From NCBI GenBank assembly GCA_002104905.1, contig MCFE01000278.1:1-64000 (forward strand): a stretch of 64,000 nt of DNA, given 5' to 3'. A model generated the notes under the pieces. That model did not search any database and had not been told where the DNA came from. It saw nothing but the letters and a program-made list of their open reading frames with translations. This DNA is from Basidiobolus meristosporus CBS 931.73 (Eukaryota > Fungi > Basidiobolomycota). Position numbers and translations under genes: made by a program. Position 1 is the stretch's first letter. Each line of letters opens with the position of its first letter. Below are positions 1 through 50,405 of the stretch, in pieces.

Positions 1-907
1 CGCTGTACTCCATCTGTGGCAGGGTAAAGTTTGCAATAGATAAGTGCATGTGTCTTGCAAGAAAAGCATCGCCATCGAAGCTATCATGGTAGCAGCATAG
101 ATTAAAGCGTAACACAAATAAAGTGAACAGGCACATTTGGCTTGTTTCTTGACAAATAACTAATTGAAAACGCGTGTACTACAACAAGAAATTCCAAGGC
201 AGCCTCAACTATCCCAAGCACTATCCACTCAATATCCCCAACTCTTGGCAAACAGCTAATCAATTTATTCTCGCCTGTACTGTGCTGTACACCCCATGAC
301 AGTCGTATTGTTCACCAATCAGCGACAACCCTAGGTTCTTGTAATAACAGGTTAATTTAATAAGCCTGCCCAAAGCTTGATTGTGGTGGCTGCTCTCCAG
401 TTGCGGCAGGGTCAGATCAGCAATATATTTAAGCATGTGTATAGCAAGAAAACAACACTACCAAAGGACAATACCTTCCAGGCAATGACAGGACTATCGT
501 AAGAGATACTTGCCTTAAAGATGTAACAAAGATACCAAGCTCACAGGACAAAGTACCATCCAGAAAAGCTACACTGATACAAAGGGAGTACCAAAACCCA
601 TTGAAATTGACCGAAATCACCTTGGAGCTATCGACGGTAATGTTTAGGCTCATTAGTGAACAATTACCAAAGTCCTTACCAATATGGATAGCTATTGCAA
701 AAACTGAGAGAATTGTGAATGATATTAAGGGTATCATTGACCAGATCGCCCTCATTCTTTACACTTTGAAGTGCAGCCTATACTGTGTAGCCTTGGTACG
801 AAGGGCGAAAGTAGCAAAGGTTAAATCAATCTAGCTTGCATAAAGCTAGCGCTATAAACGAAGCCTAATTGAGTGGGATCGAGGTGATATAAATCGGCAA
901 AATTTGC

Positions 908-1453
908 ATGAGACTCCACCAGCCAGTCATGCAGCTTTCCTTCCTCTTGCTAGTTTCCGCCATCGCTTCGTTGCATGCAATTTCCGCTACCCCACTCGGT
1001 GAATCCCAGGTGGGCTACACCAATGAGCCATGTGTTGGACAACAGGGTGCTTGTTATCAGGACACTTCGGCCCCCAGTCAAGAATACCAGCCATCAACTG
1101 AGGAGGGGGATGATTCGGAGATGAGTGAGCCAATGCAGACAAGCGAGACTTTGGGTGAGCAGCCAGGATTCTCTGGGTTGCAAGGGTTCGATATTTCAAA
1201 TTTACAACCATCCAAAGCCTTGTTGGACAACATCAATGGCCATTCCTCCAGTAAAGCCAATGCCCTGTCCAACTCAAACCAGTTCGACCAAGCGCAAGTC
1301 ATCGACCAAACCCTCTACCAGCCCAAGCAACAACAGCCACAAATTATCATCAATCAGCCAGCAGCGCGTGCGCTTAGAGGTGGGTACAAGAAGTACAAGA
1401 GATCTGCTCGTCGCCACTTCAAAGTTAGATATTTCAGTGGAAACAGACATTAA
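908..1453 (+). CDS. Small secreted Gln/Ser-rich protein (family member A1), possible Kex2-processed precursor
   Basis: Intact 181-aa ORF. Hydrophobic signal peptide (MQLSFLLLVSAIASLHAISA, from the second ATG at 929), PC-x6-CYQ motif, acidic/Gln-rich middle, basic tail after KKYKR. Homologous pseudogene copies lie at 9465-9960 and 5637-5705. Confidence 0.8.
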   Translation: MRLHQPVMQLSFLLLVSAIASLHAISATPLGESQVGYTNEPCVGQQGACYQDTSAPSQEYQPSTEEGDDSEMSEPMQTSETLGEQPGFSGLQGFDISNLQPSKALLDNINGHSSSKANALSNSNQFDQAQVIDQTLYQPKQQQPQIIINQPAARALRGGYKKYKRSARRHFKVRYFSGNRH

Positions 1454-1805
1454 GTCTAGTGAAAGTAAATTTACGAAATAAAATGAGCAACATATTACTC
1501 GGTATACTGATGATGTACAGTACTCAAGAATTTGCTGATATGCACACACGGAAACAGTGGCATTTATCGTTGTACACAATGACATTGTGAGTATTGAAGA
1601 GAAGTATGGGCAGCGGTGATAGAGCCATATAAATATACAGAGGCTGTCATTCCAGTGCATGTGTTTTATATGTTACAGGCTTCCTCAATAAAGTCTATAG
1701 AATGTAACAAGACTCACTTTATGCCCTCGACTTAACCTTATTATATAGCCTCCCATGCTATATAGCGGCCTATGCAACTAACTTATTTCTCAGCTATTCT
1801 TCAGC

Positions 1806-11471: not shown

Positions 11472-11891
11472 CTACCACTTGCGGTTATTGTATTGACTAT
11501 TTTTCTCAGGGCAATCTTCTATGAATTACATCTCTTCTACAGGGGTTGTGTATTGTGCATCCTGTGAGGGCTGCGTCAGAACGTAGGGATATGAAGAACT
11601 CTTGTCCAAGTGTTCCGCTTCCTTTTGTTTGGCAAATTTAGATGTATCGGTCCCACCCTCAGGTTCGAGACTGGGTCCTACTTGATACTTGTTGTTGAAG
11701 CCTTTATTGCTGGTGGCGTTGGCAATGTCCAGGTTGTCGTACTTCCTGGCCACAGTGATGAAAACCTGGCGCAATAATGGGGATTGGACATTCGACGTCT
11801 TAACGACGGGTAAAACTTTAGCAGGTTGGGCGGCAATGGCAACTTGATTCGCGGCAAGGCCTAGAATCATTACTACGGTGGTAAAGCACAT
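11472..11891 (-). pseudogene. Secreted-family gene B copy B3, Cys region deleted, premature stop
   Basis: 121-aa ORF 11526-11891 homologous to B1. It stops at TAA where B1 has CAA, and homology (IEDCPEKNSQYN) continues to a TAG at 11472. Could still be expressed as a truncated protein. Confidence 0.75.
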
Positions 11892-13952: not shown

Positions 13953-13959
13953 TATAAAA
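13953..13959 (+). promoter_or_regulatory. Candidate TATA box of the 662-aa ORF
   Basis: TATAAAA about 45 nt upstream of ATG 14002; an AATAAA lies at 16147-16152 downstream of the stop. Confidence 0.45.
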
Positions 13960-14001: not shown

Positions 14002-15990
14002 ATGCCTATTGGAAGCAAACACATCATAGCGCCGCAATGCGGGGATCAAGAAGATCCCGTTGTGTACGAGGTCGCTGACAACGGACTTCGAGTCGTTAGC
14101 TTCGCGAATTACATGGATGCGCTGCAATACGGAGATACAATGAAGCGTCAAACCCTTGCCTTGTACAAAAACAAGCTGGTTGGTGTGAAGTTCGGTCAGC
14201 TCAATGAGACAGGTGCATGTTCTCCGGTGCTCCATGAATATGATGGATATGGCTCTTCTGTGGACCGGATATCTGATGTTTCTCTGATCAATGGGGTCAG
14301 ACTTGAAGGAAATACTGCAGAGGGAACCCCTAGCTCCGAACTCTCCGGCGAGTTGGGCTTTAGTGAGATCAAGGTCAAATGCCAGTCTTGCGAGAGAATA
14401 CAAGAAGCCAGCTTTATCAGCAAGTGCGAAACAGCCACCGATCTCAACGAGATGTGCGCCAGGACCAACTGGGAGAATGGAAACTTGCATGTGAACCTGA
14501 AGGGATGTCCGTGCGGCAACGAGTCGGATTGGAAGCAAGTAGTTCTTTGCAGCCCAGGATTTTGGAACGTTGCTACTAGTGCGGAAAGACTTCGAGCCAA
14601 AACCAAAGGAGTCAAGAACGCCGTGAGTGCAGTGCTAGGAACGATTACCAAGCAACGCAGTATAGAGACTACATGCGACATAGATCAGATGGTAAACGAG
14701 GCAATCAGATCGCACGTCGGCTGTTGCATCACCCTTGGAGGCAGCCATGTGCCCAAACCCAAGGGCATTCACCCCACAATTACCTATCCTACCAAGCTGA
14801 GAGCAATACCATCGCATAAAGCAGCCATTCTCCGATCGATGGTCAGCAAGTACACAAAATCCGCTGTAGGGCATGAATACCTGTTTGCCAATGATAGTGC
14901 GGATCAAGGGGATCTCGCTATCAATATCAGTCTTGGCTTTGGGGCAAGCTTACGCCACAGTTGGGCAGACCCAAATGAAGTAGGATGGCTGCACTTGCTG
15001 GGAGAAGCTGCCGGCCAACTTGACACACTGATGCGGCTGCAAGATGACGATATGGAGCAGTGTGCAAAAAGCGTTGCCCTGTGGGCCAACGTCAGCATTA
15101 AAACTGGCTGTTTGGGTCCATTGGAATTACGCACACGTGTCAGGGGCTCGTTGTGCTATGATAGCTACCTGGAACGCTACCGGTTGAAGGAGCCGGAATA
15201 TGACGACACTGTGCTAACGTTGGAGGATGCAAGTGGAATCGCAGGAATGGTGGAAAATCAAGTGTTAGGGCGTTACTACGAGAGCATTCATTTGAACATG
15301 GGCGATGTATTCGAGGCCGGTCTCTGCTCTGGTTGCAGATGGGCAAGCCATGTGGTGGCGTTTGCAGCGTTGATTTATCACGATGGAGCAGATCTGATCA
15401 ACGATGTTGGGGGTAGAGAACGTCAGAATATAATCAGATTATGCGCCGACTCTAAAGCATCGACCCTACTTGGGCTTGGCGCCTATGCTGAATGGGTGCT
15501 CCGTGCTGCCCTAACGGAACAGCTGACTGATTGCTCCACTTGTGGAATACGTATCGCCGCCATCGCACGTACAGCTTACGGATGGTACTACAGTGTGGAG
15601 AGATACAGAATGTGGGAGTGTAGCAGCCAGACTGGCATTAGAACTTACACCACAGATGAAATTCAATGTGGGCTAGATATAGTCAAGGGTCTGGGCGTAC
15701 TCACTGGCTATGCTATGGAGAACGTAGCCAACCGACTAGCAAGCTTTGACCATAAGAAGTGCGCATCGAGTCACTGTTGCCAATGCGGTTTGCAATGCTC
15801 CGCTAATGTTAGCAACGACCCCTCTACAGTACTGGAGGATCTACTAGCTGGACAGGACGGGTGTTGCGTCGCATGCCACGCGCTCACCGGTGTTGTGGAA
15901 AGGGCGTCTCATGCGAATGTTGCCTACAGCACGGTAGCTTATGCAGTCGAGAATACTGGTTGTCGGGTGGAATGCGTCCGAGACAATTAG
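14002..15990 (+). CDS. Intronless Cys-rich 662-aa protein; putative non-canonical class I terpene cyclase-like domain in the C-terminal half
   Basis: By far the longest intact non-TE ORF; CpG retained and visibly more GC-rich than its flanks. Motifs: D341 and DDD348-350, H460-DGADLIND-VGGRERQN476, W528-YYSVE-RY-R536, and a C-terminal Cys cluster (CASSHCCQC...CCVAC). Coding status is high confidence; function is inferred from motifs only. Confidence 0.75.
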   Translation: MPIGSKHIIAPQCGDQEDPVVYEVADNGLRVVSFANYMDALQYGDTMKRQTLALYKNKLVGVKFGQLNETGACSPVLHEYDGYGSSVDRISDVSLINGVRLEGNTAEGTPSSELSGELGFSEIKVKCQSCERIQEASFISKCETATDLNEMCARTNWENGNLHVNLKGCPCGNESDWKQVVLCSPGFWNVATSAERLRAKTKGVKNAVSAVLGTITKQRSIETTCDIDQMVNEAIRSHVGCCITLGGSHVPKPKGIHPTITYPTKLRAIPSHKAAILRSMVSKYTKSAVGHEYLFANDSADQGDLAINISLGFGASLRHSWADPNEVGWLHLLGEAAGQLDTLMRLQDDDMEQCAKSVALWANVSIKTGCLGPLELRTRVRGSLCYDSYLERYRLKEPEYDDTVLTLEDASGIAGMVENQVLGRYYESIHLNMGDVFEAGLCSGCRWASHVVAFAALIYHDGADLINDVGGRERQNIIRLCADSKASTLLGLGAYAEWVLRAALTEQLTDCSTCGIRIAAIARTAYGWYYSVERYRMWECSSQTGIRTYTTDEIQCGLDIVKGLGVLTGYAMENVANRLASFDHKKCASSHCCQCGLQCSANVSNDPSTVLEDLLAGQDGCCVACHALTGVVERASHANVAYSTVAYAVENTGCRVECVRDN

Positions 15991-16976
15991 ATTCCGCTCG
16001 GGTATTGCGAAATGCTTATGGAAGGAAAACCAGTGATTGGGCCATTCCATCGAGATCGCGGCCTGCATAATCCACTGTATGATCCTATCCCACATGTTGT
16101 TTCATCCGAGCACCGTTTGTACGTCCATGCTTTTATCTTTAACCCAAATAAACAATGTGGAGGATCTATTGTTCCCCATCCAATGCTTATTTGATTAATT
16201 CCCGAACCAAATGCTCGTAATGTATGGTTGGATAATTACATCTCGATCTAGAAACACCCCTTTTCTAATTGATGATACTTTTCATTATTTAACTACAATA
16301 ATCAAGTATTCAAGCGAGCAATGAATTGCTGATTTAAGGAGCATCTGAAGCTGAATCACGATAGCACCAGGTACCCAGATGCGATTCCTTTTGTTGCTCA
16401 TTGTTTGGGATCTGGCACTAAAAGCTTGATGTGTGTACCAAGATGAATAGCATATACAGACATGGGGCCTATGGGCAAATTGTAGCGAAAACGTGGATTT
16501 GACACCTAAATACTGTATTGGACCCTAATTCTTGGTAATCCCGACTGAGAACACCGGTCAAGTAGTAGTGGTATTCAAGTTCTTGTGACCTTCCTTAACG
16601 TATTCTACTGTTACGACGTGGGTGTAGCTTAGTAGTTGATGGGGATACACAAGATTGACATTCGCATAGGAGCGGCTTGGTTAATTGCGGAATGGAGCTA
16701 ATCCAATGGTGGAGAACAATACCCCGTCAGGAAATGGGGACGATGAACCCAGTATCGATACAATCATAACCATGTTTGGCAACCCACTCATCGAGATCAC
16801 TTGGGAAATCAGAAATTACTCCATATGTTTGCCGGTGAATCAGGGAGACCAGATGATCATAGGCTAAATCGCTATAAGGTAACCCTCGAAATCATCAGCT
16901 TGGCTTTCATATTATATAGCCTGCGGTACTGCATGTTCTCCAGTGATTGCTGATGCCTATTCAGCTGTTGTTAAAG

Positions 16977-21707: not shown

Positions 21708-24700
21708 CCCTGTGAAAAATAATTTGGTCCTGCAGGTGGATATAATCCAGATGAGGCATCAGGATCCTATTTAGAAACCATCATGATACCAGCAGCTAGG
21801 AATTAGCAGCCCTCCTTAAGCTCTTATGATGGCATCACAATGGTGTTTTGCTGACTTTACTGCCAAATCAAGTTATAAAGCTTGACAAGATTTGATTGGT
21901 GCTGTGACAATAGTTATATGGCATTGTTACAGACTTATTGCACTCAACAACTATTCTTAATGGATCCAACTGGCCAGGACGTCCATTTGCCTTATATGGC
22001 AAGAACCTTGACAGTATTTCAACAACCTCACAGTAAGACTCTAATGGCAATATAAAGCAGTATGGCAGCCTACTGCTAGTTCTGTATAATGTTACTGTGT
22101 CAGTTTACCAAATGTTATTTTCTTTTTCTACCTCCCCTTGTGCAATTCAGGTATTCCACTGTAGAATCACCCCTCTTTATTTGCTTACCCACTACAACCT
22201 TAGGTGTTCCACATATAGCTTGAATCAAAAAAACTATGGCCCCCTGCTTACTAACCTCTACAAATGCACACACCTGCCACAATTGAAATGCTTCTATCAC
22301 CTCAACTTCACAGCTTTTTAGTGTGATACTTGCAAAGCTGCCATATACCCTGTACTGCTGGTAACATATACATCTAGCAATCATATGCTTGGTTGTTGCC
22401 ACTTCTGCCATGAGGACCTCCTGAATATCTACAAAGAACTTCCTGGTATTTAGCCAATATATTTTCTTCTCCCTTCTGGATTCTAGTCCCCCTTATAGGT
22501 GTGTTGTGGCTCTTCTTTGTGTGAATTCCCTATTGAAAGATATAGAAATTGGCTTGTGACCAAGAGAAGTCCGGCATACCTTACTAAGCTTTCCTAATAA
22601 AAGTTAGTTGCATGTTGCACCCAACCCAACTTTGCATAACTTAACTGATTACCCATGCATTGGGGCTACTTAGCTTCTTAATACCATAGGCATTGATGTT
22701 TCCATGTGCACATCTGTCCTCAGTGTTTTCCAACCCTTCCTGGCTGTCCTCCATCTGCCAACTCATTACATCCATCATGGACTTAAGGTAATATTCTTGA
22801 TGAGATTGGGATATGGTAGTACCTGCAACTTGACTTGTCTTCCTATCTCCCCACACATCTGCTCCATAGAAAACTCCCAAAAGGTGAAGCAAGGTCCAAT
22901 ATTCTCCACACACTGTGCAAGATGGAGTGGAGAATGGATACAGTAGCGGCCATGATCTATGTGTTCAGCTTTATGTTTGTAGTATAGCCACTCAAATCCC
23001 ATCACACACTCTTTGCACAACAGCTGTATATGTGTCAAGTTGGCAATGATGATCCACTTCTGCATAAATACTCCTACAATGTCCACATATGACTCCCAAT
23101 GCTTCCAGTGTACTCTTAGTAGGAATGGCTTCAGAACACCTCTTGAATAAATACACATTCAGTTCATCCAGTCTTTGCATCTGTATTGAGGCATATGAGT
23201 ATAAATACTGATTGGAGCCCATGAGAAGTAATTAGGGAAGCAGATACTCTGTAATATCTTGCCAATTCTTTAAAATTTCTCCAGTATCTCAAAGGGCCCA
23301 TTTAGCTTGCAATGCCCCATGTACAACGTGGTCATCAGTATAGGGATATTGCTGAAAAGCAAATGCATTACTCCCAATAGAAAGCTCTAGCTCCAACTGA
23401 TACCCTCTATCTTAAGTATCCTTGGTTTCCAACTGGTTCCAAACTCTGGCTGATGGCTTACAGTTTGCCAAGTTTGCCACAATTGCATGCTGACTTCTGT
23501 ATGTTCTCTCTGTGGGAAGATGATATTCTTTGTGTTGGTGTTGGGGTAATAATAATAATGGGTGCAAGTTATGGAGTAAATCCCCTGGATCTCACTTATT
23601 TGACAGCAATACCATCCATTGTGCCCAGAGAAGCCTACTATCTTGCTGATGGTTGGGGTATTTCCAATGCAGAGCATAATATGCACATTCTCATGACTAT
23701 CATTTACTGTTATCCTGCTGGGAAGCATAGAAAATTCACCCAGTAATAGTATACAGGTAGCTATCCAGGTTGGACAGTGATTTAGGCCCAGATACCAGCA
23801 AAACTACCATCAGATTATTGCTCTGATACTGTATGATGGGCAGCATATTCATATTTATCAGAATCAGTGACCAGCTGGATTTACTTGGAAAGTACTTATT
23901 TAATGAGAATCCATCAAGTGCCATGGCAAAGGCATGGTCATACATACCTTCAAAGTAGCCCTTGCTTTGTAGTAGTATATGATCTTTGCCATCAAATATA
24001 TTGGATATGATTGTGCTTGATTGATACTGAGTCCAGTACTCTATAGCATTGCAATATTTGTTGGACTGCATTAGTTTCTTTAGACACGGTAAAACCAGAA
24101 TATATCTGGAGTGTGAGCAATGTTTTCCTTCAATAGTTGTGGATTCCTGACAATATAGACACATTGTAATGGTAGCATTTTTGGATATGAATGCCATGCA
24201 ACTGTTAATACATGCTGGAATTAGGACAGTTTCTGGATCATATGTTACCAGCGGCATGATGCTTGTCCACCTGTACCTTGTAAAAGGTAAGTTGCATCCT
24301 GGAATAAGTTTGACAAGAAGTAGCAATAAATCATCAAAGCACGCATTACTGCTATTGGTGGAAACACATCACTACTCTAGCCACAATATTACATCATTCA
24401 CTAGTAGATGGATCACTGGGCTCACTTGGCTCCACAAAGTATTCTTGGTATCTTTTCAACAGGTGTTGTCTCATTGCATATAAGGATCTGAATGGGCTCA
24501 TATATGGTACTGTTGTTCAGGGAGATAGGCTCACAATCCATCAGTGAACCTTCTTTGTCAGGGCTATTGCTCTGCATGCCATATTCACAGGGCTAAGGTG
24601 AGCCTAAAGGCATCACAAACTCACCTGACTCAGCTTTCTCAAGGTGACAAGATTGCCAGGTGCCAATATAAAAGCTTCAACTGGCTGGCAAGAGAATGTT

Positions 24701-30423: not shown

Positions 30424-33400
30424 TTAGACAATAGACAATGTGTTATAAAATAGGGGTGTGAACACCTTCCTGCTTGTGGTCTTAGTGATGATCAGTGGAT
30501 CATCATGAAACGGTTTCAGATGGGCTGGCGCTACGTTGCTGATTGTCTTATTATTCAGGGTGATGGTGTACTTTGGTCCGTGGTCCGAACTGATAACGGT
30601 GCATGGGCCAATCCATCGGGGTGTAAATCGTGGGCGGAACTTGAGGCCTGCAACGGTTTGGTTGTACCACACCTTATTGCCTGGTTTCCACTTTTGTCTC
30701 GTTAGTTTCTCATTTTTGGGTGGAGGGGGAAGGTGCTTGTCGACATTTTCGAATACTTTTATGTATAGGTGGGTGATACGGTATATCAACCTTTCTATAT
30801 AGTCGTTATGTGTTGTCAGGGGGACACCTTCCATCATCAATCCAGCTTCCTCCCGCCACTTGGGTCTTCGTACATATAGGATTTCATATGGGGAGAAACC
30901 CGTTGTTTTATTTGGTGTGGTGCGCATTGCTAGGAGTGTCAGTGGGAGCAGCTTGGCCCATGATTGGGGAAGTTCCCAGTGAAGCTTCTCCAGTATGCGG
31001 CAACACGTCTGGTTCATCCTCTCGGTTAATCCGTTAGTCTGGGGGTGATACGCGGCCGTGAAGACTTGTTTCACGCCCATCATTTTGCACAGGTGGGCCA
31101 CAGTGTTGTTCAGGAAGGAACCACCATTGTCGGACAGGAGTATCTGAGGATATCTGTGTCGGCAGATGAGGTGTTCTAGAATGAATTGGGCGGTTGTCTT
31201 CTGATCTTTATTGCGGACGGCTTGGGCTTCTACCCACTTTGAGAAATAATCGGTAGCGATTATTATGTATTGTTCTCCTTTCTTTGTTTTCATAAAGGGG
31301 CCAACAAAGTCGATCCCTACTTGGTGGAAGGGCAGGTCAACCGGTATTGGTGCGGTTGTCCCTATCTTCTGACTCCGGTTGAATCTTTCGCAAGTGGTGC
31401 ATCTTTGTAACGTATTTGTAACGTCGGTCATCATTTTTTGCCAATAAAACGTTTTTCTTAACATCTTATATGTCGTTAGGGGGTTAGCATGTCCTAATGA
31501 CATATGTCTTTCTGGTATGATTTCTTCACAGGCTGCTAGTGGGGGTACCTTGGCTCTGGACTGTCCTTGGAGGAACCATAGTCAGTTTTCTTGTACTTTG
31601 TACTGACACCATTTCCTTTGAAATTCTCTCTTCTGTTTGTTTGTAACGACGTGTTTGGGATACCTCCCTTTCTTTTTAAAGCAGATTACGTCCTCGTACT
31701 CATGACTGACACGTATTTGGCAAACGGGATAGTGACTGAGGAAGTCTGCATCCTGGTGTTTCTTGCCAGCGCGGTGAATTATTTCAAAGTCGTATTGCTG
31801 TAGTCGTAGGGCCCAACGTGCTAGTCGGCCGGTAAAGTCTTTGTTTTCATCAGCCAGACCAGTGCGCTGTGGTCCGTTACTATTGTGAATTGGCAACCAT
31901 GTATGTATGTATGGAATTGTTTAATTGAATAAACAACAGCCAGACATTCTATCTCGGTAACGGGGTAGTGGCGTTTGTGTTTGTTTAGCAAACGGCTCAC
32001 GTAACCGATCGGGTGGAATTCGCCGGGTTGGTGGTATTGTCCCAGTACGGCGCCTATACCGGTGAGGCTTCCATCACAGTTAATAAAAAATCTCGCATCC
32101 CAATTGGGAAATCGTAACACTGGCGGTGACGTCAGGGAATGTTTCAGCTGATTGAATGCTCTCTTTTGAGGCTCCGACCATACAAAACACTGGCCCTTTT
32201 GCGTCAATTTGTATAGGGGGGCTGCTATCATTGCAAAGTTTTTGACAAAGCGGCAATAGTAGCCGGCTAATCCTAGGAATCCCAACACTGCATTAATGTC
32301 CTTTGGTGCAGGTGCATTTTGAACAGCTTTCAGGAGTGACGTAGATGGGTATATTCCATCTGCCAAGATCTCGTGGCCCAGGAACAACAATTTTGTATAC
32401 AGGAAATGGCACTTCTTGGGATGTAGTTTGAGTTGGTTCTTGAGGAGGGATGCCAGGATACGTTGCACGTTGAGTATATGTTCTTCTACATCGGGGGAAT
32501 ATATCGTGATGTTGTCCAGATACACAAGGGCGCATTCCCATCGTAGATTTCCTAGCACCTTGTTGATCATCCTTTGGAACGTAGCGGGGGCATTGCACAA
32601 GCCAAAGGGTAGTCGGTTCCATTTGTATAGTCCAAACAATGTTATAAAAGCGGTTTTGGGTTGATCTTCCGGGGCTACTTCTACTTGCCAATACCCGGAG
32701 ATTAAGTCAAGAGAGCTAAAATATTTAGCTCCGATTAATCTGTCCAAGAGGTCGTCTATTTGCGGTAGTGGATACACGTCCTTCCGGGTGACGGCGTTCA
32801 ATTTCCGGTAGTCGATGCAAAAGCGTCGCTTTCCGTCTTTCTTTGGGACTATCACTACGGGGGAGGCCCACGGAGACTGGCTCTCTGTAATGATGTCGTC
32901 TTTTAATAAAGTTTCAATCGTCTCTTTGATATAGTCTGTGTCAATTTTTGAATTCCTATAGGCTTTTTGCTTGATGGGGTATCTGTCGGCAAGGTGGATT
33001 TGGTGATATACCCCAGGTATATGACCAATTACTTGGTTCTTAGAGAATACTTGGGCAAGCGGACGTATTCCTTCTAGGAATTTGTCTCGTAACGTAGGTG
33101 GTAGACCGGGGTCCACATCTAGTTTGGGGAGTTCTTCTTCTGGTTCTTTGTTTGGAGGTGGTCCTTGGTCGTTTCTGTCAACTTCCTCTAAGTTTAACAA
33201 TGGCACTCCTCTAGGCAATGTCACCGTGTGTTGCCCGTTGTTAACCACTAAGCATTTCAGGCTTTGCGTTTCAAATTTTGGTGGTATCCATACTTTAGGG
33301 ATCAAGATTCCTTCCAGTTGCTTGGATGCTTTTGCTGCGGTTATCATTCTTCCGCTTGTTGAATAAGCTATTGGTGTTTCTAATGAGATCACCGTCTCAC

Positions 33401-34061
33401 TGGCGGGTGGTATTTTTATCACCTTTCGTGTGATGATCGGAGACTGCGACGGTTTCACCTCTTCAATTGTCACACTGTTGCTAAGCCCCTTGCTCTCATC
33501 GGTGATATGAATCAGTGGGATACTCTTGGTATCCCACCTGAGTTCAGATGCACTGTAAAGTATATCCATCTTATGTTGGATAAACCAACTCTCGCCAATG
33601 AGTAAGTCGTTGGCTGCGACAGGTAGGACCACAACATCTTGGCGTATTATCAAGTTGCCTAGCCAAATGGGGCAATTAGGCACCACACCTACCGTTGTAT
33701 CCAGTGGGTCATTTGCTAGCCGTACTCAAATGGTGTCGTTGGGGACTATATTTAGTTTTAGACGTTTCGCTAATGACTCTGACATGATCAACGTAGAGGA
33801 TCCTGTGTCGATAAGGGCGAGAATCTCCTTGTTCTCTATACGTACCTTTACGTATGTACCTTTATTCAGTTTTTGCAAGACCGTCTGGTTGACATGGAGG
33901 GTTGTTATCTCCTTCAATCCCTCTATCAGTTCCTTGACTAGAGCTGGGGCCAGTCCCAGTAAATTGGTTATTGGGAGGGTTGCCTTGGTTTGCTCTAGTA
34001 CCTTCATTATGGGGAATAGGCCATGGGAAGACGTGCTAGTGTTCTTCGTTTGCTTTAACAC
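30424..34061 (-). pseudogene. pol: Pol of element G1 (PR-RT-RNaseH-IN), disrupted
   Basis: ALIDTGS protease; RT IDYRKLN, LDLISGYWQ and YLDN (catalytic YLDD mutated); RNase H INCDGS; integrase GIDFVGP, LSDNG and YHPQTNG. Frameshifts near 33700 and 31845, and an in-frame TGA at 31582. Confidence 0.92.
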
Positions 34062-34210
34062 TTCTTCCCAAGGTTCATTCCGTACTTCTTCACCTAATTC
34101 CGCGCTCTTTCCTTTTGACGGAACCTCTACTACAGGTTACTTCGCCTCCTCTCTAGAAGCATCATGTTGACGCTTCTTCTTCCGCACTTCCATTGTCCTG
34201 ACCGGAGGGC

Positions 34211-35107
34211 TTAGATTGACTGAGTCCCGTTGGCCTCCTGGCAAGGGACTCTGTCTTTTGACGCCTTCTTCTCTTTTGTGTCCGGTACGGCTTCTCTTCC
34301 GTACCGTTTTTCACATTCATGGGCCTGGTGACCTACTTCTCCACACACATAACACGGATACTGTTGTCGCGGTTGTTCCATCTGTTGGGTCAGGACTTGA
34401 ACCTGGGCCTTTAGATCTACAACAGCTTCCCAGAGTTTATCACCTTCTTTGGGGACTTCTTGGACATTGTTGATTGAGAGTTCTTGGACCTTTTGCCGTA
34501 ATTCCTCTAACTCACGGTCTTTCGGGGAGGCGATTTTTCCTTTCTTACGGGGGATCCCTGTCCGTCGATCATTTGTATCACTATAGGGTAGCCCCCATAG
34601 CAAGATGACCCCTCGTACTTGTTCAACCAACTCTTGCAACGTTTTACATCCCTGTTGTTCTTCGGACGCCCTACGTCTTATTTCGTCGTCTAAGCCCATG
34701 ATGTAATACCTCATGAGCTGTCGTTCGGCAATTTTGTCCTTTGGGAGACATCGAACTCGTTGGAGAAACAGTTCAGTGTAGGCTTCATAGCTTTCACTGC
34801 TTTTCTTCCGCGAGGACAGTAGAAGGGCTTTGTAGTGGTATCCTTCGGCATATAGAAAGCGTGTCTTGTAGGCTTCTTCTAGTACATCCCAGTTGTCTTT
34901 GACTGCGTCTTCCAACCCATAATGCCATTGCCATGCTGACCCTTCCATATGTCTTGCAAACTCTCTTACTTTCTTATTGTCGTCCCATCCTGCATCAACC
35001 GCAACTCTCTCAAACTTATCGAACCACTCAAGGGCTTTCTCTCTCTTTCCCTTGTATGTCTTTAGTTTGATTGTAGTAGTCATTACCTCACTTGTGCTTA
35101 TTTCCAC
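34211..35107 (-). CDS. gag: Gag of element G1
   Basis: Open 298-aa frame with retrotransposon gag core (WFDKFERVA..AGW, AWQWHY) and CCHC knuckle CYVCGEVGHQAHEC. First ATG is at ~35083. Confidence 0.9.
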   Translation of the reverse strand: MEISTSEVMTTTIKLKTYKGKREKALEWFDKFERVAVDAGWDDNKKVREFARHMEGSAWQWHYGLEDAVKDNWDVLEEAYKTRFLYAEGYHYKALLLSSRKKSSESYEAYTELFLQRVRCLPKDKIAERQLMRYYIMGLDDEIRRRASEEQQGCKTLQELVEQVRGVILLWGLPYSDTNDRRTGIPRKKGKIASPKDRELEELRQKVQELSINNVQEVPKEGDKLWEAVVDLKAQVQVLTQQMEQPRQQYPCYVCGEVGHQAHECEKRYGREAVPDTKEKKASKDRVPCQEANGTQSI

Positions 35108-44717: not shown

Positions 44718-47700
44718 TGTCATGATCACATGACAACCATGAACACCCATGCCAAGTCTCAGCTTCCTAGCTCAATTTCTAAGAGATTCCTTGTGGAACC
44801 TTCTACTACCTTCCAGAAAGTTCCTGACCCTTCCAAACCACTGTTACACAATGGAACATTCCATGGAAGCTTCCCATTGTATTTTTCATAGTCCAGTACC
44901 ATATATGGAAGTACCAGGCCACATGACTTGGTCACATGAACAGGTGACCTAATCCACTTCCCCATCCTGTCTCAGTGCCGTGTCATCTATGTCATTTTCC
45001 CCAGCACCATTGCTGTGCCTCACCCCACAACCCCATTAGTATTAGCCAATATCTCTTGGCATCAGTATAACCAAAAAGTATATATAGTCCTATCCCCCCT
45101 TAGGTATTCCTCAGTCTAATAAACACAGGTCTTGAATAAACAGCCTTGCCTTGAATCCTGCCTTGCCTTGATGGTCCACACCTAAGTCCTTTCCTGCCAT
45201 GCCTAGCTTTTCCTCCTGCCTTGTGTCTATTCATAACAGTTTTATCAGATTCTCCTGACTTACCTGTGGATCCCTGCCTTCTGCCCAAAGTTTGAAGAAA
45301 ACTTGTAAAAGGAATACTCACCGTAAGTATCACCCATCATCTTTCCCTAGTCTTGTCCTACAAAGGCAAAGATACTATATCTTTGTAAAACTATTGGTCA
45401 AAGCTGCATTCACTTTATTACCCTGCTGGTGGAGTTTACAGTTGTTACAGTATTGGAAGCTTTAGTACAATACTCTATCAACGGACGTTGAAACCAGTAC
45501 CTTCTGAAGTGACGCTAACTTATTTAAGTTGGGGATTGTGCCTCAATAGTTGTATTCTTGACATACTAGTGGCTTTACAAACCCACTATCTAGTTTAGTA
45601 TATCCCAGTATTCCTTGCAAGCTCATCTGCCTTCCTCTGCTACCATGTCCAACCTAGAGCTGAACTTTGCCCAGCTCATGGCTGCCTTTACCCAACTGCA
45701 GCAAGACCATGCAGACCTCAGAAACACTCTTGCTCAGTTCCAGAACCAAAGTGTCCAGCAAACTAGCCATGTCCCAGTCCACCAAGAGCCCAAGTATACT
45801 CCTGCTACCAAGTTCAATGGCTCTCAGAATGAACTCCATGGCTTCATCAACATGGTGAAGAACAATCTTGCACTCCAGCCCAACCGGTACCCCACTGAGC
45901 AGGCCAAAGTTGGTTTCATCGCCAACCTGCTTACTGGTACAGCTCTCAAGTGGTTCTCCCCATTAGGGGAGACCAACTCTCCCCTCCTCAGAGACTACCA
46001 AGCTTTTCTCACTGAAATGGAGCTAACATTTGGTAACCTTGACCAAGCCAGAACTGCTGCCAACAAGATCAAGACCCTCAAGCAAGGGAACAAACCAGCA
46101 TGAGTCTATGCCTCAGAATTCCAACAACTCTCCAGTGACCTCAGCTCCTGGGGTCAAGCAGCCTTGATTAGCCAATTCCAAGATGGCTTCAATGATGAAG
46201 TTTGTGTTCTGCTACTCACACTCCCAGATCCAGATACATTGGTTGAAGCTATGCACCAAGCAATCCGGTGTGATAACAGACTATTCCAGAAGAAGCAAAA
46301 GAACTGTCAAAGACACATTCCTGTTGCAGTCCCAGCCCCTCCTGCTCCCCAAGTCACTCCAGAAGATCCTATGCAGATTGATAGTGCCAAATACAAGAAA
46401 CTATCAAAGAGTGAAAAGTCCAGACATCAACAAGCCAACCTCTGTCTATACTGTGGCCAACCAGGTCACTTTGCCAAGTCCTGCCCCAACAAGAAGTCCA
46501 GCTTCAAGCTGATGCAGTCCTCCAGCAACTAACCTGATTCAGATCTGTTGGGAAACTCCAATGTCCAGTTGCACTGACAGGTTTGCAACTGGACCCACCC
46601 ATGAAAATCCAGCATATCCAAGAATCTTCCTTTGCCACAAAATCTATCCAGTCCTTGAGAATACCTGTTAAAATCCAGATCCCTGACTCCAGTCCTGTCC
46701 CAGCCCTAGCGCTGATTGAATCCAATGCTTCATCCTGTCTCATTGACCAAGCCTTTGTCCAGAAACACTCTATTCCTGTTACCTTGAAATCCTGTCCAGT
46801 CCAAGTAGAAGTTATTGATGGAAGATCACTCTCCTCTGGTGCTGTTACCCATGAAACATGCTTACTCCAGCTTTCCAGTACTGCCCACCAAGAAAGAATA
46901 GCCTTCAACATCATCAACTCACCACACTATCCTATTATGCTTGGACGCTTATGGTAGAGCTACCACAATCCAAGTACTGATTAGAAATCCAAGATCCTGT
47001 CATTCACCAGATCCCACCAAGTCAACTCCATAAAATCTCCAGACCCTGATAACTGTGAAAAGACGGTTGGCAACAGTTCAACAGCCCAAGATACCTTGCC
47101 AGCTGAAGGAGCCCCCTCAGCAACTATACCAGCCAAGTACCAAGAGTTTGCCCCTGTCTTTGACAAGAAGAAAGCAGAACTCCTCCCTGACCATTGGCCT
47201 TATGACTGCCCTATTGACCGTGACCGTGGAAAAGTCCCTCCATTTGGCCCAATATACAACCTCTCCCAGCCGGAGTTGAAAGAACTCCATGGTTATATTG
47301 AAGAAAACCTCCAGAAGGGTTTTATTCAGCACTCCAAATCACCTGCTGGAGCCCCAATCCTCTTTGTCAAGAAGAAGGATGGCACACTCAGAATGTGTGT
47401 GGACTACTGTGCTTTGAATAAGATCACAGTCAAGAACCGCTACCCCCTGCCCCTGATCAACACACTGTTGGATCAGCTATATGTTGCCCAAGTCTTCACC
47501 AAGATTGACTTGCAAGGAGCTTACAATCTTGTCAGAATCAAGCCCGGTTATGAATGGAAAACTGCCTTTTGCACAAGATATGGTCACTTTGAGTACAAAG
47601 TAAAGCCATTTGGCCTCACCAATTCCCCTGCTGTGTTTCAACACCTCATGAATGACATATTCCGTGAATACCTTGACCAGTTTGTGGTAATCTACCTTGA

Positions 47701-50405
47701 TGATATTCTCATATACTTCAAGAGCCAAGATGAACATGATGAACATGTCAAGAAAGTATTGAGAAAACTAGACTCTGCTGGTCTCTATGCCAAGCAAGAG
47801 AAGTGTGAATTTGACCAGAGAGAAGTGAAATTTCTTGGTTACCTCATTGGCCCTGAGGGAACAAGAATGGATCCAAAGAAAGTTGACTCAGTCCAATCCT
47901 GGAAAACTCCAAGCTCAGTCAAGGAAGTACAATCCTTCCTGGGATTTGCCAACTTCTATTGCAGGTTCATAGCCAACTACTCCAAGATAGTCACCCCTCT
48001 GACAAAGCTTACCCAGAAGAACACACCTTTTGCCTGTAATGAGGAGCAATCCAGCTCATTCAACCAACTCAAGAAATCTTTCCTGAAGGCCCCCCTGCTT
48101 GCCCACCCTGACCTTGAGAAGCAATTCATAGTGGAGACTGATGCTTCTGATTTTGCCCTTGGTGCCATACTCTCCCAGTATGATGAGGACAATGTGTTGC
48201 ACCCCATTGCAATCTACTCTTGGAAGTTTTCCCCTGCAGAGATCAACTATGATATCTATGATAGGAGTTGCTTGCCATCATTGTAGCCTTTGAGCAATGG
48301 AGACACTACCTGGATGGTGCAAAACACAAAATCAAAGTCTTCTGTGACCATAAGAACCTTGAGTACTTTGCAACTTCCAAAGTACTAAACCGGAGACAAG
48401 CCAGATGGTCACTCTTCCTGTCTACCTTTGACTTTACTATCACCTATAGACCTGGTGCAAAGCAAGGAAAGCCTGATGCCCTGTTCAGAAAAAAGGAATA
48501 TGCCCTGGAAGAGGGAGATGATGCCTGTTGGCAAATGGAACACCCATTGCTGAGCAAGAAACATTTTGAGATTCTTGCCACCCAGTCCTCAAGTCTTGTC
48601 ATCCCTTCATTCCTACTAAGGATATCAGCCAAAACCTTGAATGCTATCAAAAGAGATTTCTGGTGGCCTAGAATGATAACTCTTATCAAAGAGTACATTC
48701 TGACTTGTGATATTTGCAACTGTGCAAAACCAGCTAGACACCAGCCCTATGGACTTCTTCAGCCCTTGCCTATCCCAGAACACCAACGGGGATCTATATC
48801 TATAGACTTCATTGCTGACCTCCCAGAGTCCTGTGGCTTCAATGCTATACTTGTAGTGGCTGACTGGCTGACCAAGATGGCTCACTTTATCCCTTGCTGT
48901 AAGAACACTGATGCAAAAGAAACCACTGTGTTAGTCCTGAAGAATATTTTCTGCCTTCATGGTATCCCCAGTGATATTGCGTCAGATAGAGGCCCACAGT
49001 TTGTGTCCAAGTTTTGGAAACACTTCATGCAATACCTTAGTGTTCAAGTCAAGCTCTCTACTGCCTTCTATCCACAGACTGATGGCCAGACTGAAAGAAT
49101 CAACCAGATTCTAGAGCAATACCTCTGGTGCTATATCAATTACCAGCAAGAAAATTGGGTTGATCTACTACCTGTTGCTGAGTTAGCCTACAACAACTCA
49201 AGCCATAGTGCAACCGGTTTTACACCATTCTATGCAAACTATGGATTCCACCCTCAGTTTGATATCCAGATTCCAACAAACCCAATGAGCCCACATGCGG
49301 CTGAAGATGCCCAAGCAGTCCAGGACATCCAGAATACCCTCAAGGAAGAACTATCCTTAGCTCAGGAAAGCTACAAGATATTTGCCAATCTAAAACGGCA
49401 TCCCAGCCCTGATCTTAATGAAGGAGATTTTGTATGGCTGCTCAGAAGAAACATCAGCACCAACCGCCCTTGTGACAAATTGGATTTCAAGAAACTTGAT
49501 CCTGAAAGGATCTAGAAGAAGCTTAGCCCTATAGTATATCAGCTACAGTTACCAGCAAGTATGAAAATCCATGATACTTTCCATGTGTCCCTCCTGGAGC
49601 CGTATTGTAGGAACACCTTGCCAAACTGGCAAGAAGCAAAGCCCCAAGCTATCCAGGTTGACCAACATCAAGAATTTGAAGTTAAACAGATTCTAGACTC
49701 CAAGTATATCCGGTCAAAGCTGTACTACTTAGTAGACTGGATTGGTTATGGTCCAAGTGACCAAACATGGGAACTAGCTACCCATCTCACTAATTGTCAA
49801 GAACTAGTTACCCAGTTCCACCAGCAATATCCTGCAAAACCTGCCCCAAAGGGAAACAGAGCTTTGCCTGGAAAAGGAGAATAGTGTCATGATCACATGA
49901 CAACCATGAACACCCATGCCAAGCTTCAGCTTCCTAGCTCAATTTCTAAGAGATTCCTTCTGGAACCTTCTACTACCTTCCAAAAAGTTCCTGACCCTTC
50001 CAAACCACTGTTACACAATGGAACATTCCATGGAAGCTTCCCATTGCACTTTTCATAGTCCAGTACCATATATGGAAATACCAGGCCACATGACTTGGTC
50101 ACCTGATCAGGTGACCTAATCCACTTCCCCATCCTGTCTCAGTGCTGTGTCATCTATGTCATTTTCCCCAGCACCATTGCTGTACCTCACCCCACAACCC
50201 TGTTAGTATTAGCCAATATCTCTTGGCATCAGTATAATCAAAAAGTATATATAGTCCTATCCCCCCTTAGGTATTCCTCAGTCTGATAAACACAGGTCTT
50301 GAATAAACTGCCTTGCCTTGAATCCTGCCTTGCCTTGATGGTCCACACCTAAGTCCTTTCCTGCCATGCCTAGCTTTTCCTCCTGCCTTGTGTCTATTCA
50401 TAACA
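44718..50405 (+). mobile_element. Full-length Tf1/sushi-like chromovirus (Ty3/gypsy G2), CpG-decayed
   Basis: 521-bp LTRs (44718-45238, 49885-50405, ~16 differences), perfect TSD CCTAG, PPT GGAAAAGGAGAATAG. Gag with CLYCGQPGHFAKSC, RT YLDD, RNase H VETDASD, integrase HPQTDGQTER, chromodomain FEVKQILD..YLVDWIGY...TWE. Confidence 0.97.

Follow-up and report, generated by a model that had tools for sequence, protein, structure and literature searches.

In a 64,000-nucleotide stretch of contig MCFE01000278.1 of Basidiobolus meristosporus (hereafter, the window), one intact reading frame of 662 codons stands among the remains of transposable elements, raising the questions of whether it is a functional gene, what kind of protein it encodes, and where that protein came from. 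An initial annotation, made without database searches, had read it as an orphan gene for a divergent terpene cyclase fused to an unknown Cys-rich N-terminal domain, possibly of horizontal or mycoviral origin.

A functional gene in a small eukaryotic family

A mechanical listing of open reading frames (ORFs) places the frame, from its ATG to and including its stop codon, at 14002–15990 on the forward strand, where it is the longest in the window outside transposable elements; the remaining long ORFs are pieces of Ty3/gypsy gag, RT-RNase H and integrase, together with a fragment of a tnp2 transposase. It is intronless and retains its CpG dinucleotides, as the initial annotation had described, and the TATA and AATAAA elements proposed there are both present (Table 1). 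With a GC content of 0.51 and a CpG observed/expected ratio of 0.83, compared to 0.42 and 0.24 for the remaining window, the ORF forms a CpG-retaining island amid Ty3/gypsy debris. The frame is compositionally distinct, as had been claimed, but its GC contrast is mostly that between a coding sequence and the CpG-depleted repeats around it. We note that genes of B. ranarum generally have a GC content of 41–47%, compared to 35% for its intergenic DNA. A search of the flanks for terminal repeats of the kind that bound mobile elements found none, and the window holds no additional copy of the gene.

Comparison with the B. ranarum orthologue gives a dN/dS of ~0.07 over 573 codons, with dS saturated, and a dN of 0.03–0.055 in the catalytic-like core. 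The DNA similarity between the two species is restricted to 14266–15992, ending with the stop codon. The ORF is thus a functional gene under strong purifying selection, and the initial annotation was right to treat it as real. Its surroundings of decayed transposable elements could point to a fortuitous ORF or to a pseudogene in decay, a reading that the dN/dS value effectively refutes and that we find scarcely credible, as 662 codons stay open where the next longest ORFs are transposable-element fragments, and 23 residues have been kept invariant in distant relatives. At the 5′ end, the frame of the B. ranarum orthologue meets a stop codon immediately ahead of the position that matches residue 87, where the contig also runs out, and the conservation seen thus covers the protein from residue 87 onward.

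The protein is not the strict orphan it had been taken for. A phmmer search of 1.84 billion representative proteins, together with further searches, recovered ~12 relatives. Besides a second paralogue in B. ranarum, these include a protein from Acytostelium and sequences from soil metagenomes and metatranscriptomes, one of which is a poly(A) mRNA in a ciliate-type genetic code. Among the representative proteins, the relatives are eukaryotic or unnamed environmental sequences only; two phmmer matches, P0004 (subtilase/cadherin) and P0005 (a repeat protein), were set aside as local or of low complexity. A scan of metagenomes yielded one locus, and a word-index profile search recovered just two close Basidiobolus proteins. 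Two scans of 185,579 prokaryotic species genomes, covering bacteria and archaea, returned no relatives, and neither did 2.9 million viral contigs. All genomic copies are intronless, though neighbouring genes contain introns, and they sit in repeat-rich DNA or close to contig ends; one family-member contig, L008, is an ordinary eukaryotic genomic contig. As initially noted for the window gene, there is no P450 or prenyltransferase nearby, nor is there any other terpenoid gene, and the same holds for every genomic copy. We found no published description of this family, which is small, unnamed and eukaryote-only, and occurs in a few soil microbial eukaryotes.

This distribution also bears on the origin of the gene. 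A recent acquisition from bacteria or a mycovirus would be in line with its lack of introns, its GC content relative to the flanks, and the horizontal gain of secondary-metabolism genes reported for Basidiobolus (PMC7466969). We nevertheless regard such an acquisition as very improbable. Two Basidiobolus species share the gene at saturated dS, and any acquisition was therefore not recent; the relatives are eukaryotic or environmental, with none from the scanned prokaryotic genomes or viral contigs, and the bacterial or mycoviral origin finds no support. The GC argument is further weakened by the CpG-depleted repeats in the flanks, which explain much of the contrast, and by the comparable difference between genes and intergenic DNA in B. 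ranarum. Viral structure models searched with Foldseek gave nothing beyond tape-measure-like helical noise.

Domain layout and invariant residues

The predicted architecture begins with a variable N-terminus, followed by a zinc-ribbon-like Cys4 element and a helical linker; an all-alpha core of ~250 aa comes next, and a C-terminal extension of ~120 aa that bears Cys residues completes it (Table 1). The highest 19-residue Kyte–Doolittle mean along the 662-aa protein is 1.3, and it therefore has no transmembrane segment; we predict it to be soluble.

Table 1. Positions of the gene, its candidate signals and its conserved elements in the window
Feature	Position	Strand	Basis or remark
TATAAA, candidate core promoter element, 44 nt before the ATG	13953..13958	+	Sequence match only
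Intronless 662-aa protein-coding gene	14002..15990	+	ORF listing; matches the annotated gene model on MCFE01000278.1
N-terminal residues 1–86, status uncertain	14002..14259	+	B. ranarum stop just before the residue-87 equivalent, where the contig ends
Cys4 zinc-ribbon-like element, C127-x2-C130 ... C169-x-C171	14380..14514	+	Kept in most full-length family members
All-alpha catalytic-like core, residues ~300–545	14899..15636	+	Family alignments; helical in both AlphaFold models
D341, the Asp of (W/L)-D-(E/T)-L, at the C-terminus of a long predicted helix; proposed degenerate DDxxD counterpart	15022..15024	+	Nearly invariant in family alignments
R424-Y-Y-E427-S428, proposed diphosphate sensor/linker/effector triad	15271..15285	+	Predicted helix break; anchor definition from PMC8450962
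Invariant C442-x2-C445, just ahead of the putative metal-binding helix	15325..15336	+	Family alignments
H460-D461-G-A-D464-L-I-N467-D468-V...E473...N476...R479, proposed Mg2+/diphosphate site	15379..15438	+	Helix C-terminal end and following loop
W528-Y529-x4-R534-Y535	15583..15606	+	Trp exactly six before RY; W528, R534 and Y535 invariant in all members
C-terminal extension with invariant C587 and C622-x2-C625	15760..15876	+	Family alignments
AATAAA, candidate polyadenylation signal, 157 nt past the stop	16147..16152	+	Sequence match only

Within the variable N-terminus, residues 17–72 weakly resemble the C-terminal region of the bacterial protein P0004 (E 1e-7, 39% identity over 56 aa). The Cys clusters of the initial annotation, CQSC (C127/C130), CPC (C169/C171), CASSHCCQC (from C587) and CCVAC (C621/622/625), are all present, as are its acidic residues D341 and DDD348–350. 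Its unknown Cys-rich N-terminal domain is in part the zinc-ribbon-like element, which the family conserves (C28, C31 and C72 are invariant in our alignment of the element, A5), while the GCC pair that had also been assigned to this domain is not family-conserved. N-terminal pieces of the relatives gave only weak, noise-level zinc-ribbon matches in Pfam. We know of no precedent for a terpene synthase with a fused zinc ribbon. Elsewhere in the protein, six Cys (442, 445, 514, 587, 622 and 625) are invariant in the family and may form one or more structural zinc sites, by likeness to the Cys4 zinc site of BcABA3 (PMC11695735).

Almost all invariant polar residues of the family fall within the core. 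Across relatives that are only 17–24% identical, the ciliate-code poly(A) mRNA included, 23 columns are invariant. Homologues lacking HDxxDxxxD and RY had been named in advance as an outcome that would refute the terpene cyclase proposal. That outcome was not observed: H460, D461, D464, N467, D468, E473, N476 and R479 are invariant in 10–11 sequences, again including this mRNA, as are the Trp and RY residues at the same level of divergence. The positions first given for these motifs, with H460 at 15379, N476 ending at 15429, and W528 to R536 at 15583–15609, were accurate. At 424–428, the family consensus is R-(L/Y)-(Y/F)-E-G, in which R424 and E427 are invariant, and G at position 428 is universal apart from the pair of Basidiobolus A proteins, with S in that of the window. 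H319 and D323 are also conserved. Of the acidic patch noted initially, D341 is conserved across the family, whereas DDD348–350 is Basidiobolus-specific.

These residues can be compared with the anchors defined for class I terpene synthases, namely a Trp six residues before RY, an ND(L,I,V) opening the NSE motif, a sensor Arg 46 residues upstream, a linker Asp at +3 and an effector Gly at +4, an Arg at −34, and an acidic residue at +14 (PMC8450962). W528 and R534–Y535 match the first exactly, and the invariant N467-D468-(V/I/L) corresponds to the start of the NSE motif. R424 lies 43 rather than 46 residues before N467, and R-x-x-E-(G/S) fits the linker and effector in relaxed form; of two further invariant residues, R392 is at −32 (anchor at −34) and D435 at +11/12 (anchor at +14). 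N476 follows D468 by eight residues, as the anchor Asn follows the last metal ligand. Written as a regular expression, the ordered pattern matches 10 of 11 members but only 3 of 500,000 composition-matched shuffles, with tolerances that were picked post hoc and several spacings agreeing only to within 2–3 residues. The family lacks the DDxx(D/E) that canonical enzymes have on helix D, with D341 as a single conserved Asp, and departs from the canonical NSE/DTE consensus ND(L,I,V)xSxx(K,R)E, with G, N or S at +4 and the conserved Glu at +6 rather than +8.

Structure searches and candidate functions

Searches with the window protein and ten family members gave no Pfam match, terpene synthase families included, at E ≤10. 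The whole protein had no match in PHROGs. Against the PDB sequences, which include the ABA3 chains, single-sequence queries at E ≤10 gave no match, and family profiles gave either nothing or chance matches to AlbC and SerRS at E >1; the ABA3 chains were matched by neither kind of query at E ≤10. For the full-length AlphaFold model (model 1, pLDDT 40), the Foldseek matches with a probability of at least 0.2 number 12, and every one is to a class I terpene cyclase, namely CotB2, Sat1646 (also 7e4o), trichodiene synthase or selinadiene synthase; all are non-significant (E ≥0.17, TM ~0.3). The better AlphaFold model (model 2, pLDDT 61.5, pTM 0.69) has no significant Foldseek neighbour (best E 0.26, TM ≤0.2); terpene and prenyl synthases are scattered amid unrelated helical proteins, and its top matches, likewise non-significant, are the haem-oxygenase-like diiron enzymes HrmI and FlcD. 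In both models, at low to medium confidence, the number of predicted helices between D341 and RY agrees with the D-to-K series of the class I fold, with each motif at a helix C-terminal end or break: the helix bearing D341 spans 324–343 in model 1 and 77–97 in model 2, that near R424–E427 ends at 431 and 180, respectively, and the H460–R479 cluster has a pLDDT of 75–92 in model 2.

Taking these results together, we tentatively favor a noncanonical class I-type terpene synthase/cyclase as the most likely function of the 662-aa protein, with fold class, metal, substrate and chemistry that we infer from the motifs and their predicted placement. The divergent terpene cyclase of the initial annotation thus finds backing in motif conservation and the anchor fit, but not in the profile and structure searches; given the lack of Pfam and PDB matches, the low-to-medium-confidence models and the absence of a significant Foldseek neighbour, a terpene-cyclase-like function is therefore put forward as a hypothesis, not as a result. 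Also weighing against it are the missing DDxxD, the noncanonical spacing within the NSE motif, the lack of terpenoid genes around every genomic copy, and a zinc-ribbon fusion that is unprecedented to our knowledge. In an enzyme of the proposed kind, D461, D464 and D468 (with N467 and E473), at the C-terminus of a single long helix, would bind Mg2+ jointly with D341 of an earlier helix, and R424, R479 and the R534–Y535 pair would grip a prenyl diphosphate by its diphosphate group. The residue that follows E427, at the helix break, could play the effector role, and ionisation would generate an allyl cation, to be cyclised within a pocket whose walls include W528, Y529 and further aromatic residues. 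As in BcABA3, structural zinc held by the six invariant Cys might tether the C-terminal extension to the rest of the core.

The same residues could instead belong to a metal-dependent enzyme of another kind, such as a phosphohydrolase, a nucleotide- or diphosphate-processing enzyme acting via H460–D461, or a di-metal oxidase, in which case the likeness to terpene synthases would be convergent or coincidental. The invariant His-Asp doublet, the conserved H319 and D323 and several carboxylates are consistent with this, as are the lack of a profile or fold link between terpene synthases and the family and the diiron enzymes at the head of the model 2 matches, and the invariant Cys could hold a catalytic metal or Fe-S cluster rather than structural zinc. 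We consider it somewhat less likely, since neither an HD-domain nor any other Pfam family matches at E ≤10, none of the many HD-domain and phosphodiesterase structures is among the Foldseek matches, and only two His are conserved, fewer than a 3-His/3-carboxylate diiron site normally needs. Moreover, W-x5-RY and R-x-x-E-G have no role in those families, and the shuffles indicate that the ordered terpene synthase pattern seldom arises by chance.

Less likely again, and in our view improbable, is a non-catalytic zinc-binding protein with a regulatory or nucleic-acid- or protein-binding role, perhaps derived from a mobile element or virus and patchily spread among soil microbial eukaryotes. Such a protein would account for the zinc-ribbon-like element and the many conserved Cys, for intronless copies beside intron-bearing neighbours in repeat-rich DNA or close to contig ends, and for the patchy taxa (Basidiobolus, a dictyostelid and a ciliate-code organism). 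It would not account for invariant residues drawn mainly from D, N, E, R, H, W and Y and clustered at helix ends, as is typical of an active site, and a mobile or viral source fits poorly with a gene without terminal repeats or a second copy in the window, with the empty searches of 2.9 million viral contigs and of viral structure models, and with the ordinary eukaryotic character of contig L008.

Without the known motifs, noncanonical terpene cyclases go unnoticed in genome mining, and classes IB, IC, ID–IF, ABA3, TriDTC and VigB each opened new terpene scaffolds. Somewhat more speculatively than the function itself, the present family may form a new class among the noncanonical terpene cyclases of class I type, zinc-ribbon-fused, found in zoopagomycete fungi, dictyostelid amoebae and ciliate-code protists, missed by all current terpene synthase profiles, and part of an unclustered terpenoid pathway in Basidiobolus. 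If this is correct, terpene cyclisation reaches early-diverging fungi and protist lineages without known cyclases of this type, and R-x-x-E-G ... H-D-x-x-D-x-x-N-D ... W-x5-R-Y becomes a mining signature. We are aware of no terpene cyclase from a ciliate, and the ciliate-code members would therefore be the first candidates there. For a family without a Pfam domain, a solved relative or a description that we could find in the literature, the invariant residues give a precise, testable hypothesis; should the terpene cyclase reading fail, what remains is a strongly conserved, patchy and always-intronless eukaryotic protein, putatively a metalloprotein.

Comparison with known terpene cyclases

Among known systems, canonical class I enzymes (selinadiene synthase, trichodiene synthase and CotB2) share with the family the order of the anchors, with an Arg, R-x-x-(acidic)-G at a helix break, an acidic residue, ND(V/I/L) at the end of a long helix ~43 residues on, and then W-x5-RY, within what is, for the family, a predicted all-alpha core of a soluble protein. 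The distance of 125 residues from D100 to N225 in trichodiene synthase is comparable to the 126 residues from D341 to N467, but the distance from the NSE motif to RY is shorter in the family (67 aa) than in trichodiene synthase (79, from N225 to R304) or selinadiene synthase (86, from N224 to R310). The family further differs in having no detectable sequence or profile similarity to these enzymes, no DDxxD, a second metal motif of H-D-x-x-D-x-x-N-D instead of ND-x-x-S-x-x-x-E, and a zinc-ribbon N-terminus and Cys-bearing C-terminal extension that are not canonical.

Several other systems were considered and set aside. The D(N/D), ND and RXXKD motifs of classes ID–IF do not fit in spacing, and those classes have bacterial homologues, which this family lacks. 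UbiA-type membrane cyclases/prenyltransferases, with their NDxxDxxxD, do not agree with a protein that has neither a transmembrane segment nor a Pfam UbiA match. An HD-domain phosphohydrolase was rejected on the Pfam and Foldseek results given above, and on the position of H319, 141 residues before H460–D461. Class IB enzymes (BalTS/YtpB; PMC5939612) come closer, as their first signature, DYLDNLxD, has the DxxDxxxD spacing of D461/D464/D468, and both place a Gly effector at a kink in helix G, in the case of the family by prediction; however, class IB is bacterial, the family has no counterpart of its second motif, DY(F,L,W)IDxxED, there is no Pfam match, and BalTS is not among the Foldseek matches.

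The ABA3-type enzymes (BcABA3, RuABA3 and SkABA3; PDB 8ZAC–8ZAG; PMC11695735) likewise lack the canonical Asp-rich motifs, and have a helical core with RY followed by extra C-terminal helices with a Cys zinc site, a layout that the family resembles in its predicted helical core, its RY pair and its invariant Cys, a putative zinc site. The RY pair and C-terminal Cys4 zinc site of BcABA3 are real (PMC11695735), whereas kinship with the 662-aa protein is unsupported: ABA3 enzymes chelate their Mg2+ cluster through Glu, in contrast to the Asp/Asn cluster of the family, they have bacterial homologues where the family has none detectable, and ABA3 structures are not among the best 50 Foldseek matches of either model.

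A parallel to the putative metal site is found in the noncanonical Trichoderma diterpene cyclases (TriDTC), whose DxxDxxxD, cited in the initial annotation, is a proven catalytic triad (PMC12370890). In Tri4155, D445-VG-D448-LCA-D452 occupies a position similar to that of D461-GA-D464-LIN-D468, which is invariant in the family. Both are orphan "hypothetical proteins" without a Pfam or InterPro domain, encoded by mostly intronless genes of narrow and patchy distribution, and models of both superpose poorly on known cyclases. TriDTC is, however, reported to lack the RY pair (PMC12370890), which the family has in its invariant W-x5-RY, and phmmer from the window protein against the 1.84 billion representatives (E ≤1e-3) found no hypocrealean protein, the group that holds 38 homologues of Tri4155. 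A deep relationship between the two appears improbable; were it real, it would overturn the proposal that the TriDTC cyclases arose de novo.

The gene and its setting

The longest non-transposable-element ORF in the window coincides with a called gene on MCFE01000278.1, the Basidiobolus meristosporus CBS 931.73 contig whose positions 1-64000 an exact-sequence look-up matched to the window, and the initial annotation was correct in its coordinates and residue positions, as well as in describing a long, intact, intronless, CpG-retaining frame with TATA and AATAAA elements. Its GC content is 0.51 and its CpG observed/expected ratio (o/e) 0.83, against 0.42 and 0.24 for the remaining window, with the immediate flanks partly CpG-retaining too (o/e 0.61 at 12–14 kb and 0.69 at 16–18 kb). 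Neither antisense ORF is likely to be a gene; most probably they arise from the higher GC content of the coding strand. The 93-nt direct repeat, which does not flank the gene on both sides, is probably what remains of a repeated element.

Features of the window and of two related contigs
Feature	Position	Strand	Remark
ATG-initiated ORF, 662 aa	14002..15990	+	ORF listing
TATAAA	13953-13958		sequence match
AATAAA	16147-16152		sequence match
Antisense ORF, 180 aa	13996-14538	-	overlaps 5' third of gene
Antisense ORF, 161 aa	14196-14681	-	overlaps 5' third of gene
93-nt direct repeat, 75% identity	9164-9256 and 11515-11607		2.35 kb apart, upstream of gene
CpG island 1	~12-18 kb		around gene; o/e 0.6-0.83
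CpG island 2	~30.5-33 kb		Ty3/gypsy element; o/e 0.8-0.88
Ty3/gypsy retrotransposon interior	30424-35107	-	nearly intact
gag with CCHC knuckle	34211-35107	-	own open frame
RT-RNase H	31821-33686	-	own open frame
Integrase	30424-31503	-	own open frame
RT-RNase H and integrase	47096-49515	+	two overlapping frames
RT-RNase H fragment, integrase fragment	55636-56253, 61915-62877	-	retroelement debris
Weak tnp2 (Transposase_21) fragment	23736-24326 (-)		listed with retroelement debris
B. ranarum K7432_001257 locus	JASJQH010006902.1, 10001-12397		
Environmental family member	Ga0247655_10003519, 1-1457		poly(A)-tailed transcript

Apart from the gene, the long ORFs comprise pieces of Ty3/gypsy gag, RT-RNase H and integrase (30.4–35.1, 47.1–49.5, 55.6–56.3 and 61.9–62.9 kb) and a tnp2-type transposase fragment. 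The nearly intact element is probably young, because it has retained CpG, and the two overlapping frames of the plus-strand piece suggest a frameshift. We note that the window-wide CpG o/e is 0.24, the two islands being exceptional; this pattern suggests that older repeats have decayed through C-to-T changes, either methylation-driven or RIP-like.

Comparison with the B. ranarum orthologue K7432_015643 (79% protein identity, 5' end truncated by a short contig) gave a dN/dS of 0.07 over 573 aligned codons (Nei–Gojobori, synonymous sites saturated), with dN just 0.03–0.055 across residues 301–545, and nucleotide similarity between the two species is limited to window positions 14266-15992, ending at the stop codon. 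The ORF is a working gene. The evidence of conservation starts at about residue 87, excluding the first ~86 residues, because the B. ranarum frame has a stop codon immediately before the residue-87 equivalent and its contig ends there. Within this excluded part, residues 17–72 (window 14050-14217), predicted to be partly beta, align over 56 aa at 39% identity with the C-terminal part of a bacterial subtilase/cadherin-repeat protein of 1995 aa (phmmer E 1e-7); the similarity could be fortuitous or mark what is left of a domain. Further on, C127-x2-C130 and C169-x-C171 form a putative zinc-ribbon-like Cys4 element common to most full-length family members; no hydrophobic stretch of the window protein is long enough to span a membrane.

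A family of eukaryotic and environmental proteins

The protein was initially called an orphan, but it is not a strict one: when 1.84 billion cluster representatives were searched exhaustively with phmmer, four true distant relatives emerged, and a follow-up search starting from one of these recovered more. Members comprise a second B. ranarum protein (K7432_001257, 798 aa), Acytostelium subglobosum XP_012751397.1 (549 aa) and environmental sequences from JGI and ENA (291–728 aa); none of the papers searched mentions their accessions. K7432_001257 is a very divergent, intronless paralogue, 17% identical to the window protein, with protein kinase and MFS sugar transporter genes nearby. On one environmental contig of ordinary eukaryotic genomic DNA, the intronless family gene adjoins an intron-split serine carboxypeptidase gene. 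All genomic copies are likewise intron-free despite intron-bearing neighbors, and no terpenoid-pathway gene adjoins any copy in the neighborhoods inspected, extending the earlier remark that no P450 or prenyltransferase lies nearby. In the poly(A)-tailed environmental transcript, TAA or TAG occurs in frame 20 times and a TGA stop stands directly behind the conserved C-terminal ...VIDN, so that its source organism must use a ciliate-type genetic code; when TAA/TAG is translated as Gln, the sequence keeps 23 of the 23 invariant residues of the family. The window protein and its orthologue sit together on a very long branch of the maximum-likelihood tree, at 17–24% identity to all other members.

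Of the horizontal or mycoviral origin hinted at previously, a bacterial or mycoviral source is unsupported: the gene is older than the split of the two Basidiobolus species, its relatives are all eukaryotic or environmental, and the GC contrast is largely that of coding sequence against CpG-depleted repeats. Searches of 185,579 prokaryotic species (one genome each) and 2.9 million viral contigs returned no relatives, and Foldseek no match among viral structure models. The constant absence of introns and the patchy distribution would be compatible with transfer between eukaryotic lineages or from a donor not yet sampled.

Conserved core and predicted fold

Invariant across 10–11 sequences are R424, E427, C442, C445, H460, D461, D464, N467, D468, E473, N476, R479, A482, L489, C514, W528, Y529, R534, Y535, C587, C622, C625 and D661, with D341, R392 and D435 nearly so. 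The H-D-x-x-D-x-x-x-D...E..N and W-x5-RY motifs singled out initially are exactly this core, while DDD348–350 and GCC from the same motif set are lineage-specific.

Type I terpene synthase anchors catalogued by the Dickschat laboratory (PMC8450962) and their family counterparts
Anchor	Family	Agreement
RY pair, Trp six residues upstream	W528, R534-Y535	exact
NSE triad ND(L,I,V)xSxx(K,R)E	N467-D468-(V/I/L), without S/T at +4 and E at +8	start only
Diphosphate-sensor Arg ~46 upstream, effector Gly four after	R424-x-x-E427-(G/S), 43 upstream	relaxed
Arg 34 before sensor	R392 at -32	near
Acidic residue 14 after sensor	D435 at +11/12	near
Asn eight after last metal ligand	N476, eight after D468	fits if D468 is this last ligand
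Asp-rich motif	lone conserved D341, 126 residues before N467	degenerate
Leu/Val 14 before Asp-rich motif	V/L at -14	fits
Pro 21 before Asp-rich motif	none	absent

The R424-x-x-E427 element lies at a predicted helix break, and the putative effector position behind it is G in most of the family and S in the window protein. An anchor-derived regular expression, R..[DE][GS].{30,50}ND[LIV].{55,95}W.{5}RY, matched 10 of 11 members against 3 of 500,000 composition-matched shuffles, a figure that overstates the case because the tolerances were picked after the data had been seen. The residues matched are the family's invariant ones.

Two AlphaFold models were built, of the full-length window protein (six sequences, pLDDT 40) and of the core of a metagenomic member (11 sequences, pLDDT 61.5, pTM 0.69; 70–94 in the half that begins at the CxxC pair and runs to the C-terminus). 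Both are all-alpha from residue ~300 onward, placing D341, R424–E427, H460–D468 and W528–Y529 at helix C-terminal ends and R534–Y535 in the loop that follows, and the number of predicted helices separating these positions agrees with helices D to K in a class I fold. Neither model has a significant Foldseek match in the PDB. For the poor full-length model, all 12 matches with a probability of at least 0.2 are class I terpene cyclases (CotB2, Sat1646, trichodiene synthase and selinadiene synthase), at non-significant scores (E ≥ 0.17, TM ~0.3); for the core model, the top matches mix diiron oxidases, polyprenyl synthases, a cadinene synthase and transporters (E ≥ 0.26, TM ≤ 0.2). Since profile searches likewise gave no Pfam or PDB sequence link, the fold class is neither confirmed nor replaced by another.

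Our best reading, held tentatively and at somewhat less than even chances, is that the protein would be a prenyl-diphosphate cyclase or synthase, Mg2+-dependent and of a noncanonical class I type, that carries a zinc ribbon as well as a C-terminal extension stabilized by zinc. A metalloenzyme of another kind, to which the diiron oxidases among the core model's non-significant matches would point, is less likely, if still a serious competitor; a non-catalytic zinc protein spread horizontally, for which the patchy distribution and conserved cysteines speak and against which the invariant acidic core does, is a good deal more improbable.

Comparison with noncanonical cyclases

We could not establish membership in the canonical class I, ABA3, class IB, UbiA or HD families, as the protein departs from defining features of every one. 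The DxxDxxxD triad cited initially for Trichoderma cyclases is real, being the mutationally proven catalytic motif of the noncanonical diterpene cyclases TriDTC (D445VGD448LCAD452, PMC12370890), and D461/D464/D468 share it; a link to TriDTC is a possible lead. Aspartates are spaced alike in DYLDNLxD, the first of the class IB motifs (PMC5939612). Finally, the noncanonical sesquiterpene cyclase BcABA3 was rightly cited for its RY pair and C-terminal cysteines: to a canonical-like helical core and RY pair it adds four more helices at the C-terminus along with a Cys4 zinc site (PMC11695735), a layout paralleled by the family's conserved cysteines behind the RY pair.
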